Source of the DNA: Vitrella brassicaformis CCMP3155
Taxonomy: Eukaryota > Protista > Chromerida
Direction of reading: 5' to 3'
Assembly (NCBI GenBank): GCA_001179505.1
Contig: CDMY01000227.1
Location: 614,613 to 678,612, forward strand
DNA: 64,000 nt
Position 1 is the stretch's first letter, and every line of letters starts with the position of its first letter. The notes beneath the pieces are model-generated. The model saw only the letters and a list, made by a program, of their open reading frames with translations. It searched no databases and had not been told where the DNA came from. This document shows, piece by piece, positions 19,082 to 24,800 of the stretch. The position numbers and the translations under genes are program-made.

Positions 19082-19785
19082 GACCGCTCACCAACACCAA
19101 GTGCAGCAAGCAGGGGGAGGACGGGGCCTTCAGTCAATCACTCAGCGGAAAGAAATCAGTCTAAGCCGAGGAGAAAGAGAAGAACGCGAGAAAATGGCAG
19201 CTCGCTCCCTCTCGAACTGTAAACTCTCCCCCCACTGTCTAGGGACGGCGGCACATGCACACAGAAAGCCAGCCAGCCAGACCCATCCAGCGGTTGTATG
19301 GCACATGTGGGAGGTCGACAAAAAACGACATGCGTGTGTCTTGTCTTGCAATGATGTGTCTCAGCGAGATCAGTCAGTCGCCAATTCATGTGTTCACTTG
19401 TCCACAGAGCTGTTCACTGCAGGCAGACGGATCACATCGGTGGCATGGATGGCTTTGAATTTCAGCAGTGTATTTGTTGTGTATCTAGCCATCTAGGTGT
19501 CCATCTCACTCGTGCATCAATGCATGTGTGTCTACACGTCCCTTGCACCATCGTCATGTCGGACAGCGACATACCAACCAGCCTCCAGGCGCTGGGAACG
19601 ACGGGCAAAAGACTGACGGACCAGCCGGCGCATTGACTGCCACGCGAGAAAACCAACCAATCCCTATGCACAAGTCTTACTAAGCAAACCCCCCATCTCC
19701 TCTTCGACTCCCTGCTCGCTAGGCACAGCGTCAATTCCATCACCGCCGGACACATGCACATAATGCACGTATGTCCCTGCTACAG

Positions 19786-20910
19786 CTACCAGCCTTGATC
19801 GACTGCCGACCGTGTGACATCGCCGTCGAACGCATCGTAGCCTATATACGGGAGCGGCCGGTCGGACAGGAGCGCGTCAAAGTCAGCCTTCAACACCTCC
19901 TGCGCGTGCACACAGATATCGACGACTCACTCCGTACACACCTTTCCGTTTCCCTCCCCGTGGTTGGTGCCTGACCTTCGGTATCAGTCCAATGAGTGCA
20001 GTGAGGATCTCCCCCCGTGCTGACACGAGCGCAATGTGAGGAATGGCATCGACGCGGAACCTCTGCACCAGCCGCTGACTCGACGTGTCCGACCGGCTGC
20101 CATCTACCGTCACGAAGTTGACCCGCCCTGAGTACTCCTTCTCGATGGTCCGCATCGACGGCGCCATCGTCTTGCAGTTCTCGCACCACGGCGCGTAGAA
20201 ATCGATGACAGTCGGCCTCCCGTTGGTGAACAGCTGCGCATCTGGTCACACGGGGAGAGGAGGGCACCATGAGTGAGCACTGGTCAATCAACAAGGGTCG
20301 GCGTGTGCTTACCGACAGGCGGTGAGTCGCGTTCCATCTCGCGTAGGATGACCAAGGGGTCCGCACGGAGAGGATTCAGCCGCTGACCGCCATACAGCAA
20401 GGCCCCACCCAATCCACTACCTGACAGATGCAGGGCGCACGCACACACGCAGCACAGACAAGGGGATGCACAACCACGCCGCTCTCCACTGTGTGTGCTG
20501 GCATGCCTTCTCTGCTCACCCAAGGCGACCCTCATATTCTCGCGCCTCTCCACATTGAGTGCCTCCACCGCCGCCTCCCTCTCCCTCTCCCTCGCAGCAG
20601 CCGCTCCATCGTCGTTGACACTCTTGCCTAGCAGAAGCGCCATCCTCTCTTGGGCCGTAAGGCCGTCATCCGGTGCAGCGACAGCTGTGCTGTCGGCCTC
20701 TCTCTTGCCATCTGTTTCACCAGCGCTGGTCGATTGCTGCTCGGCGAAGCGGTGAGTGGGCCGTCTGCGGAGCTGCAGTGATGGAGCGGAGACGAATAGA
20801 GGGTCAAGCCACGGCCGCGAGTCAGAGATCACGGAGTTTGCCGGGTTGCGCGTCGCCGCGTCTCCTTGCAGCAGAGGGAAGAAACACAGGATGCCAGAGA
20901 TCTTCTTCAT
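19786..20910 (-). CDS. HCF164: HCF164/TxlA-like thylakoid thioredoxin, plastid-targeted, 4 exons
   Basis: TNGRPTVIDFYAPWCENCKTMAP...RVNFVTVD...FRVDAIPHIAL parallels HCF164 (GKPTVVEFYADWCEVC...VNFVML...GIPHFAF). A hydrophobic segment precedes the Trx domain, and there is an N-terminal leader. Confidence 0.8.
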
Positions 20911-21025
20911 TCTGGGAGGGAGTGGGAGAGACGGAGCGAATTTACGATCGGAGCGAATCAGTCCAGTAAGCTCGCAGTGAGGTCGAAGCCGCAGACCAGT
21001 GCCCTTTGGAAGACATCGCATCGCA

Positions 21026-21388
21026 ATGGCCTTCACTCAGCTGAAAGCGACGGGCCTGATCTGCCTGCTGGCCATCGCGCAGTGCTTCGCCATCGACACC
21101 AGAATCGACCTCTCGAGGGCTGCATTCATCAACCCGGCACCCATCGGCAGTGCATCTGGCAGCCGCGCCCTCTCCCGGACGGCATCGCCACAAGGTATCG
21201 GGTCGCCTCTCCTCGCACCCTTGCTGGGCCTTGACGGCAGCGACGCTTCGGCAACGGCCCTGAGCATGGCAGATGATGCGCCACCCGGCAGCCGCGCGTC
21301 GGTTGACTTGAACAGGACATCGTTCTTCTGGGGTGTGCTGCTGATCCTCATCCTCTCGGTGCTCTTCTCGAGCTACTTCTTCAACTGA
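21026..21388 (+). CDS. psbL: Nucleus-encoded photosystem II subunit L with bipartite plastid-targeting presequence
   Basis: C-terminus [29 protein letters not shown] matches PsbL ([28 protein letters not shown]). It is preceded by a signal peptide ([22 protein letters not shown]) and an S/A/R-rich transit-like stretch with AFINP. Confidence 0.93.
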
Positions 21389-21892
21389 CCGACCGACCGA
21401 CGGACGACGGACGGATGACCACTGCTGCTGCGGGAGGACAGGGCGGCGGGAAGGAAGACCGTGTTTGCTTTCTTTACCAGATGTGATGTGATGGCTGTCC
21501 GCAAAATGAAGTGACGTGTGCGAGCGTGGATGCGGGTTGGAGGAAGGCAGGCGTGTAGGTTTCTGTGTGACTGCGTGAAGTGGAGTGGGGTGCGTCACGG
21601 CCGACCGACTGGCTGCTGGATGTTGCCGTGCCACTCACGGTGGTATGGGTGACTGTTTGATTGGGCGCACCGCACCTGTGTGACTGACGTGGACGCATTC
21701 GTGCTTGCAATGCAATGCAATGCAAACCCTACCTACATGACAGACCGAACGAAATTTCTGCGGTGAAGGCTGTTGCAGTCAGTAATCTGATTTGGTATAT
21801 TCGATCGATTGCCACCCCAAAGGGAAAACGTCCTTACAGCATCCACACTGAAATGCCCAGTAGGTCCATCTCTCACACACAAACGCAAACGG

Positions 21893-24800
21893 TCATCTCC
21901 CAGCCGTCCTCACCAGTTTCAGAGCTTCCGTGATCTTTGCCTTCGTGTCATCATCCGCATCAGTCAGACCTGCCCGCGGCGCAGCCACACAGCCAATGAA
22001 CACAAATGCTGAATCAAGCAATCAGCCACTGCTCACCGGAGAGCCTGGTCTGGGCCTCCTGCAGCATGTAGGGCTGGGCAACGCCACTTCGCGACAGCCC
22101 CCATATGGTGTCGGCCAGTGTGCGGTCAGACATCCTGTGGACCTGCAGACAGACAGCCACGCAGACATTGCACACGTCGTCAACATTCAGACGAGCGTCT
22201 TGTCTATCCGTCGATGAATTCTTCGTCGTCTGACCTGTTCAGCTGCCTGTTCAGCCACCGCCGTGCCCAGCTCACGGCGAATCGACTGCACCACACACCA
22301 ACCAAACATTCGGGCTTCACCTCATTCCAGCGTCCCTACCTGATTCCTGCCCCGCGCCACTGCAGGTCCACCAGCTGTGGTGCCGAGCGTCCAGCTGAGC
22401 CTGGCCAGGTCGTTAGGGCTGACCAAGCCACTCTCGCCACGCGATGCAAATCGCCGGCGGAGCTCAGTGTACCCGACATCGAATAGCTGCACGGAAGAGG
22501 AGGCGAAACATTGATGCGAGATGAGACGGATGGGTACCTGGCTGGCTGGCTCGCTCACCCGCGGATGCTCATCGGCGGCGCCGAGGGAGGCGTAGCAGGA
22601 CAGAAGGCGGACCCATTGTGGAGTGGTCAGAGCAGCGCGACAAGACAGGGCCTCCGTTTCAAGCTCCTGCACACATGTAAACAAGGAAGAAATGACGTCT
22701 CCGTGTCAGCCTTTCTCGTGTTGTCCTGACCGTGAAAAGCTCCTGCTCATACACGCCAACGGTTGCGAATGACTGCGCACACGTGACGATGTCGACGGGC
22801 TGGAACTCCTGCAGTTTGGCCGACACCTTGCGGGCCAACGCCTGGAAGGAACCACGATCCACACGGGGATATATGGACCTGACAAGGACATGACGCAGGC
22901 CGTTTATCCATGATGATACATCTGTGCTCTGCTTCATGGTGTGCGCTTGCTCACTTCATAAGGTCCCACACCGTCTCCGAGAGCTGCGGGATCCGTCCGC
23001 GACGCAGACTGCTCGACGCCTCCTGAATGACCGACCAGTCACACAGCAAACAGGAATTGAGCTCATTCTTCTCTCTCCGATGCCACTGACGTACCTTTGC
23101 AGCCGCCTGATAAAAGTCCAGAGGCGGGCTGTCTGGCTCTGACGATTCCTTGGATGCAACGGACGACAGCAACACCACCGCTTCCTGACACAACACAGAA
23201 TGATACAAGCCAATCGATATGCTCATTCCCATACTTCTGTGCGTATGGACGAGCCTGAGGAGAGAATTCTCCTATCTGGGTGGCGGCCTTGTCAGCGATG
23301 GCCCGGATGAGGCGACCACTCTGATCCCCCTGATGCGTCTCGTTCATGGCCGCGTGGTACAGCAGCACATGCTGGAGCTTCGAGTATGCGTATGTGACGT
23401 CCCGCATGTCCTCGGGTGTCATCTCGTGCACCCTCTCGACCAAGTGGTCAGCCACCGACACCAGGAATGACGTGTGTAGCTGGGTGAGGGCCGACCGCTG
23501 GTGCAGGGCCGTCAGCTGCCGTTCCATGCGGCATGCGGCAAGCAGGATGTGGCTGATGGACTGCAGGCTCATCGACATCAGCCGGGGCGTGGCGAAACGC
23601 ACAGTCAGCTCCAGCAGATCCAGATCGACCAGGTCCGCCTGCACCAGGCAACGGGGGTGGCGGATGCATCACATGACGGTCATCTCTGGCTGCGTCTGAC
23701 CTGATTGAGCGCCCACATGACAATAGACACCTCCTGCGGCTTGACCGAACCCTGTGCCAGCGCCCGTTTGCCACCACCACCGTCGCCGCCAATGTCTCTC
23801 CTCAGTCGAGTCTTGACTTCAGCGGCCAGCGCACTAAAGACGTCTTCGTCGAACCACTTGAGCTTGGCGTATCCCCACATGATGATGGCGATGGCTTGCG
23901 ACGAATAGCTGCTGAACGACGATGTGCTCAGCAGCCGCTTGCGGGACTCCTCGTACAAGGCATCGGGGGGATCATCCGCAACGGCAAACGACCACACCAG
24001 CAGGGCCAAATCCTGACGGGAAAAGAGATGGGAAAAATGATAGCCACCTCACCACGTGATGTGCTTCGGGTGTGCGGTGTAGTGCGGTGTAGGTACCCGT
24101 GGTGGTGCTTGTTGGAGCAGCTCGGCCGTGATAGCCTTCCCGATCATTCGCAGCGCCTTGCGCACCAGCTCCACCACCACTGCAGACTCCGATATCAACA
24201 CTTGGCCCCCGCTCTCACCCCCATCATCGTCAGACTCCAATTCCTCAGCAGACGAAATGCTCGCGTAAGAATGTCGCCGCAGATGTGTGCTCATGGCCCA
24301 CGCAATGGTGGTCAGCTGTCCAGTCGAGAGGGAACCCCGAAGCAGCAGCCAGTTCAGCCGCGGAATGGCGGCCCGCAGGAGGGGAGCCGACAGTGTGTCC
24401 AGCTGCATCCACCAACAACAGGCATGGAAGGGACCTGAGGTCTAAGAGAGGTTGCGTCCATAAGCTTACCTTGACGGCAGCCCACAGAGTAGTAGTCAGT
24501 GCCCCTGCCCCCATGCTTGATGCCTGACGCACGCAGGAAAGAGCAAAGAGATATAATGGCTCTCAGGGCGCATGTGCGTACAACGCCAGTTGCCTACCCT
24601 TTCTGCGACGTGACGCCCCAGCAGGTCCAGCACATGTGCGCTATCCTCGGTCAAGCTGCGCTGTGGACGCTTTCTAGATGGGGAAACCTCATCAGAATCG
24701 CCGTCTGAGCCAGCCTCGAGTCGAGAAGGTATGGGCATGTCTGCAGTAAGGGCGTCGGCTGTGCCGCCCCGGGAAGGGCCTGACTGCATGGCGAGGCTCC

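Follow-up and report, generated by a model that had tools for sequence, protein, structure and literature searches.

To our knowledge, PsbL, a very hydrophobic and essential core subunit of photosystem II (PSII), is kept in the plastid genome by almost all algae and plants. A psbL gene in the nucleus bears on why organelles retain genes, and thus on two hypotheses, that of hydrophobicity and that of redox control. The closest described systems come from dinoflagellates and chromerids. In Symbiodinium minutum, there are four nuclear psbL models, psbL1-4 (Mungpakdee et al. 2014). For the chromerids, Sobotka et al. (2017) scored the genes of the thylakoid complexes as plastid-encoded, nuclear-encoded, or absent (their Fig. 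1). Their Table S1 gives psbL as EuPathDB nuclear models, Vbra_11908 in Vitrella and Cvel_21989 in Chromera, and cites psbI, psbJ, and psbK of Vitrella as GenBank plastid proteins. Thus, psbL is catalogued as nucleus-encoded in both chromerids, and the caution in an initial annotation of this DNA that the transfer may already be known was well placed. The table provides identifiers only, with no description of a leader, of expression, or of the plastid operon. Neither Vbra_11908 nor Cvel_21989 was found in the text of the other literature searched, and that literature yielded no earlier description of the leader, the expression, or the broken plastid operon. Nuclear psbL in chromerids is therefore already published as a table entry, and what is new here is its confirmation and the detail.

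The locus described here lies in a window of 64,000 nucleotides from Vitrella brassicaformis CCMP3155 (contig CDMY01000227.1, positions 614,613 to 678,612); all coordinates given without a contig name are those of the window. Since the assembly has a single psbL, Vbra_11908 is this locus. We consider it very probable (roughly 0.93) that it is the functional, nucleus-encoded psbL of Vitrella, which goes back to an old endosymbiotic gene transfer and took over from the copy in the plastid; import, processing, and assembly into PSII are what we infer for its product.

The psbL reading frame

The gene is an open reading frame on the forward strand at 21026-21388, with an ATG at 21026, 120 codons, and a TGA stop codon at 21386-21388. 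The Pfam PsbL profile (PF02419) matches residues 91-120 with 54.2 bits (cut-off 33, E 1.5e-14) and is covered from position 8 to position 37 of its 37 positions; a profile search of the whole assembly scores the same frame at 55.5 bits. In addition, residues 86-120 align without gaps to residues 4-38 of PsbL in solved PSII structures, of which 29 distinct PsbL chains match, the best with an E value of 2.3e-10. The NRTS motif, the single C-terminal transmembrane helix, and the C-terminal YFFN are all seen in the translation and in the alignment to these chains.

The complete PsbL unit, which starts with an internal methionine, comprises residues 81-120 (21266-21385), as judged from the Pfam match and from alignment to a plastid-encoded PsbL, P0121. 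Its single transmembrane helix spans residues 99-117 (21320-21376), according to Kyte-Doolittle hydropathy and to alignment with the solved PsbL helix. The Kyte-Doolittle mean within this helix rises to 3.49 over residues 104-114, and the helix ends 3 residues before the C-terminus. The approximately 80 residues that precede the PsbL part have no family match in Pfam. The GC content of the coding sequence is 62.5%, and that of the window ranges from 45 to 63%. Together with an RNA contig that runs through the frame without interruption, these results confirm what the initial annotation had claimed, a PsbL core fused behind a leader of about 80 residues in an intronless, GC-rich ORF.

A 230-residue ORF on the reverse strand (20942-21634) overlaps the gene. 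We attribute it to chance in GC-rich DNA; the match to PsbL lies on the forward strand. A scan of the region for bacterial promoters and terminators gave nothing above chance, and bacterial signals of this type are not relevant to a nuclear gene.

A single-copy nuclear gene without introns

Within a 678-kb scaffold of even composition, the psbL ORF has an interior position, and the genes on both sides of it carry spliceosomal introns. These are seen in the RNA contigs as CT..AC joints, which correspond to GT..AG on the reverse strand: three upstream of psbL and eight downstream. The presence of spliced RNA in both flanking genes places the psbL locus in the nucleus, as had been claimed from the letters alone. 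A six-frame search of the whole assembly (72,700,666 bp in 1064 contigs) with the PsbL profile, at E values up to 10, finds one place only, this ORF, and a search of the assembly with a plastid-type PsbL protein finds the same single place.

Two RNA contigs, one each from runs X1 (21001-21967) and X2 (21084-21799), are collinear with the genome over psbL and have no joint there. Set against the GT..AG joints in both neighbours, this collinearity indicates that psbL has no intron. Two other nuclear photosystem genes of the same genome, psaL (L010, C759:226560-226799) and psaF (L011/L012, C407:49212-49635), are matched exon by exon and are thus split by introns, unlike psbL.

The upstream neighbour is a divergent, spliced gene at 19500-20935 on the reverse strand, delimited by RNA contigs that have the three joints and that end at 20930 and 20935. 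It encodes a thioredoxin-fold protein: the Pfam Thioredoxin profile matches the exon at 19976-20239 with 57.6 bits and includes a WCxxC site. A short hydrophobic stretch at the beginning of the first exon is a candidate signal peptide, and the protein presumably resembles the plastid thioredoxins of the HCF164/TxlA type. This gene is arranged head-to-head with psbL, and the ends of the RNA contigs of the two genes are just 66 bp apart (20935 versus 21001). Thus, the two genes may share a bidirectional promoter.

The downstream neighbour, at 21804-23451 on the reverse strand, is convergent with psbL. Its RNA contigs contain eight joints, which define at least 8 introns of 50-92 bp. Its 3' end adjoins the psbL 3' UTR, and contig X1 fuses the two genes. 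The sole hint of a family for this gene is a weak match to FAST_1 (E 0.037) in the exon at 22731-22874.

A plastid contig that lacks psbL

The plastid genome is represented in the assembly by contig C467, which is 71,040 bp long with a GC content of approximately 42-56%. The gene order on this contig is psbJ-psbT-ycf4-psbE-psbF-petG-psbN-psbH-atpA, with psbN on the opposite strand (L008 3126-5413; L007 1251-1592). No psbL was found on C467, and the gap between psbF and petG, its usual site, is just 73 bp. A gap of this size indicates that psbL is gone from its normal position behind psbF and that psbJ has moved. The initial annotation had proposed the plastid genome as the place to look, and there psbE and psbF are followed directly by petG. 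Together with the RNA contigs that cover the nuclear copy, this is the opposite of an intact plastid psbL beside an unexpressed nuclear one.

At its end, C467 carries 342 bp that match C467:12150-12491 in reverse complement with 99.7% identity, indicating that an inverted repeat has been collapsed in this contig. The usual psbEFLJ operon is dismantled on C467; psbJ and psbT lie inside the inverted repeat, the edge of which coincides with the beginning of ycf4. The published plastid genome of Vitrella is reportedly about 85.5 kb, longer than C467. A small part of the plastid genome could be missing from the assembly, and the absence of psbL from the plastid is drawn from the searches of the whole assembly and from the table of Sobotka et al. 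(2017).

Expression and constraint

The 5' UTR of the psbL mRNA includes at minimum 21001-21025, where 21001 is the start of contig X1 rather than a mapped start of transcription, and the ATG at 21026 is the first ATG in that contig. The 3' UTR extends from 21389 to approximately 21799, the end of contig X2; a separate contig, that of the downstream gene, begins at 21804. The RNA contigs give neither the strand nor the true ends nor the level of the RNA. The mean word depth in X2 is 2470 for the psbL contig, and 50 and at most 6 for the neighbours; such depth measures expression poorly, and it is a hint that the psbL transcript is highly abundant. The exact 120-residue protein is on record in the MMETSP transcriptomes, at NCBI, and in UniRef.

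The GC content at third codon positions (GC3) is 0.785 for the psbL coding sequence and 0.805 for the PsbL part, compared to 0.38-0.58 for seven plastid genes. This difference indicates that the transfer is old rather than a recent insertion of plastid DNA. Together, these results show a transcribed nuclear gene that is present in one copy, lacks introns, and has taken on nuclear codon usage.

A contig from a sediment metatranscriptome (X6), which is 95-99% alike, covers 21100-21503. Within the coding sequence, it differs from Vitrella by two changes only: an A to C at 21197, which gives the conservative replacement I58L in the leader, and a synonymous A to G at 21283. The 3' UTR of the X6 contig, in contrast, has several indels relative to Vitrella. 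A coding sequence that is nearly unchanged next to a UTR with indels in this relative indicates that psbL is under constraint, as judged from this comparison. In the sediment metatranscriptomes of 2022 (X6 and X7), both psbL and its thioredoxin-fold neighbour have counterpart transcripts that are 90-99% alike (20618-20914 and 21100-21503), suggesting that sediments harbour an active close relative of Vitrella.

No protein-level record of the PsbL peptide in Vitrella PSII was found in Sobotka et al. (2017) or in the other literature searched. The functional endosymbiotic gene transfer that had been claimed is nevertheless borne out by a gene that is absent from the plastid contig, nuclear, expressed, and of nuclear-type GC3; function and import are what we infer.

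The leader

The leader was analysed by hydropathy and by manual application of the -3/-1 rule for signal peptide cleavage. Its n-region has one lysine within residues 1-7. A hydrophobic core follows at residues 8-23, with a Kyte-Doolittle mean over 11 residues that peaks at 2.57 for residues 11-21. The -3/-1 rule is satisfied at four positions, and the candidate cleavage sites are after C20 or after A22. By this manual rule, the parts of an ER signal peptide can be recognised: an n-region, an h-region, and a c-region, with a small residue at -1. Accordingly, the signal-peptide-like segment was placed at residues 1-20 (21026-21085). Chromerids keep a phenylalanine immediately after the signal cleavage site, and this motif is looser in Vitrella than in Chromera (Fussy et al. 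2019). In the psbL leader, F21 would occupy +1 only with cleavage after C20; cleavage after A22 would place an isoleucine there.

Residues 21-80 (21086-21265) form a transit-peptide-like segment, assigned by composition and by the lack of a Pfam match. Serine, threonine, and alanine together account for 40% of this segment, and its 4 arginines are balanced by 4 aspartates, so that it carries no net positive charge. By hydropathy, residues 21-80 include no hydrophobic stretch of membrane-spanning length; there is mild hydrophobicity at residues 57-68, where the Kyte-Doolittle mean reaches 1.5. Together, hydropathy and the -3/-1 rule support a putative bipartite leader with a signal-peptide-like part, followed by a transit-peptide-like stretch, and a possible phenylalanine at +1, in agreement with the signal plus transit peptide of the initial annotation; import would follow from this anatomy.

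Residues 81-120 are equal in length to the 40-residue, plastid-encoded PsbL P0121, and in both P0121 and the PsbL unit of Vitrella the first methionine stands at the same distance from the V-[DE]-LNRTS motif. Thus, Met81 may be the former plastid start codon; a single methionine at a given place could also be due to chance. With one copy, no introns, and a short leader, psbL could be used as a compact reporter of import.

A possible route to photosystem II

Entry into the ER, passage of the inner membranes by means of a transit peptide, and processing in the stroma make up the established import route of complex red plastids. By this route, the psbL mRNA would be translated on ER-bound ribosomes, and a signal peptide of 20-22 residues would bring the chain into the ER lumen and then be cut off. 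Cleavage would probably expose Phe21 as the new N-terminus, the motif used by complex plastids of the red type. The transit-peptide-like stretch of about 60 residues would next guide the protein through the inner plastid membranes to the stroma and be removed near Met81. Once inserted into the thylakoid, its N-terminus facing the stroma, the mature PsbL of 40 residues would take its place in the PSII core next to cytochrome b559.

Where the helix lies may be important for this route. With 3 residues between its end and the stop codon, the helix would still be inside the ribosome tunnel at termination, and a helix held there at termination could not be anchored in the ER by co-translational stop-transfer. 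The C-terminal position of the helix may therefore be why so hydrophobic a subunit could move to the nucleus.

Alternative explanations

Fragments of plastid DNA do enter nuclear genomes, and a protein-level record of Vitrella PsbL was not found in the sources searched; the locus might thus be a dead insertion of plastid DNA (NUPT) or another non-functional copy, with PsbL supplied from elsewhere. We regard this as very improbable. The ORF is the only psbL in the assembly, and psbL is gone from its site on the plastid contig. The frame is intact and has gained a leader of 80 residues, its GC3 of 0.79 lies well away from the plastid values of 0.38-0.58, and it is transcribed, with a coding part that is conserved in an environmental relative whose UTR has indels. 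It is hardly credible at all that the stretch is contaminating DNA or an assembly error, such as a piece of dinoflagellate DNA fused to a Vitrella scaffold. Such an origin would fit with the dinoflagellate origin of nearly all other leader-bearing PsbL proteins among the matches listed and with the heavy bacterial contamination of the raw data described by Woo et al. (2015), but the gene is interior to a 678-kb scaffold whose composition is uniform, and RNA contigs of several runs, at least 99% alike, run from psbL into a spliced neighbour. The leader and the N-terminal part of the Vitrella protein are also unlike the uniform dinoflagellate type with its LPEPRPNDAMLP stretch.

Another possibility is that the gene is functional and the leader works otherwise, through other start or cleavage sites, through use of residues 57-69 as a stop-transfer segment in the dinoflagellate style, or through transport of the protein anchored by its helix rather than soluble in the lumen. 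The four positions that satisfy the -3/-1 rule, the lower conservation of the +1 phenylalanine in Vitrella than in Chromera, and the Kyte-Doolittle mean of 1.5 over residues 57-68 are compatible with such a mode. Residues 57-69, however, are too short and too weakly hydrophobic for a membrane span, and the ATG at 21026 is the first of the RNA contig; we judge these variants unlikely. The preferred reading remains a functional nuclear psbL whose product would be delivered by a bipartite leader.

Comparison with dinoflagellate and plastid-encoded psbL

A word-based search with the 120-residue protein alone reached just two Yihiella proteins, and a query made from an alignment was needed to reach the dinoflagellate family. 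A profile built from the Vitrella protein and the two Yihiella proteins yields 418 PsbL proteins of 66-210 residues with N-terminal extensions. All of the named proteins among the matches listed are from dinoflagellates, including the genera Symbiodinium, Polarella, Prorocentrum, Alexandrium, Effrenium, Pelagodinium, Scrippsiella, Pyrodinium, Togula, and Ceratium; no protein named Chromera is among the matches listed (120 of the 418).

The architecture is shared. Like Vitrella PsbL, the nuclear-encoded proteins of peridinin dinoflagellates (Symbiodinium, Polarella, Prorocentrum, Alexandrium, and Yihiella; P0002-P0120), of approximately 95-140 residues, consist of a complete C-terminal PsbL behind a leader. 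They have the same 11-residue helix end and a phenylalanine after the hydrophobic signal segment. Thus, the comparison with dinoflagellates that had been recommended finds the same design, and a nuclear psbL is standard in that group. In contrast, outside the signal segment the dinoflagellate leaders show no alignment with that of Vitrella. In the alignment, the mature parts of the dinoflagellate proteins are nearly uniform, and a nearly invariant LPEPRPNDAMLP stretch, which is missing from Vitrella, precedes VELNRTS. In addition, dinoflagellates have several psbL copies, and Vitrella has one. No solved PSII chain of a dinoflagellate or chromerid was found that would give the mature N-terminus.

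A more far-reaching proposal is that psbL was transferred only once, as a whole reading frame, in the ancestor shared by dinoflagellates and the apicomplexan/chromerid line. According to this proposal, Met81 would be the old start codon, and the transfer would have been enabled by the helix in the last 22 residues, which would escape stop-transfer in the ER. We offer it as a tentative idea, on balance doubtful. If true, whether a small photosystem subunit can leave the plastid would depend on the position of its helix rather than on hydrophobicity itself.

Among plastid-encoded proteins, a search with the 40-residue core reached one plastid PsbL, P0121, which is 79% identical to Vitrella PsbL over 34 residues, with 17 identical helix residues. 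P0121 is encoded at L009 6001-6123 on a 28-kb plastid contig of run SRR26782605, in the order ycf4-psbE-psbF-psbL-psbJ-psbX-ycf66-psbI-petB-petD. The serine in LSVLF had been considered as a derived marker of nuclear copies and was dropped, since the plastid-encoded P0121 has a serine there too.

The mature part of Vitrella PsbL is collinear with plastid-encoded PsbL, both P0121 and the red-lineage PsbL chains 8wb4, 7y5e, and 9kqb. Plastid-encoded psbL is leaderless, lies in the psbE-psbF-psbL-psbJ operon, and has AT-richer codons; in all three respects the Vitrella gene is otherwise. The chromerid case connects the extreme gene export of the dinoflagellates with the apicomplexan line.
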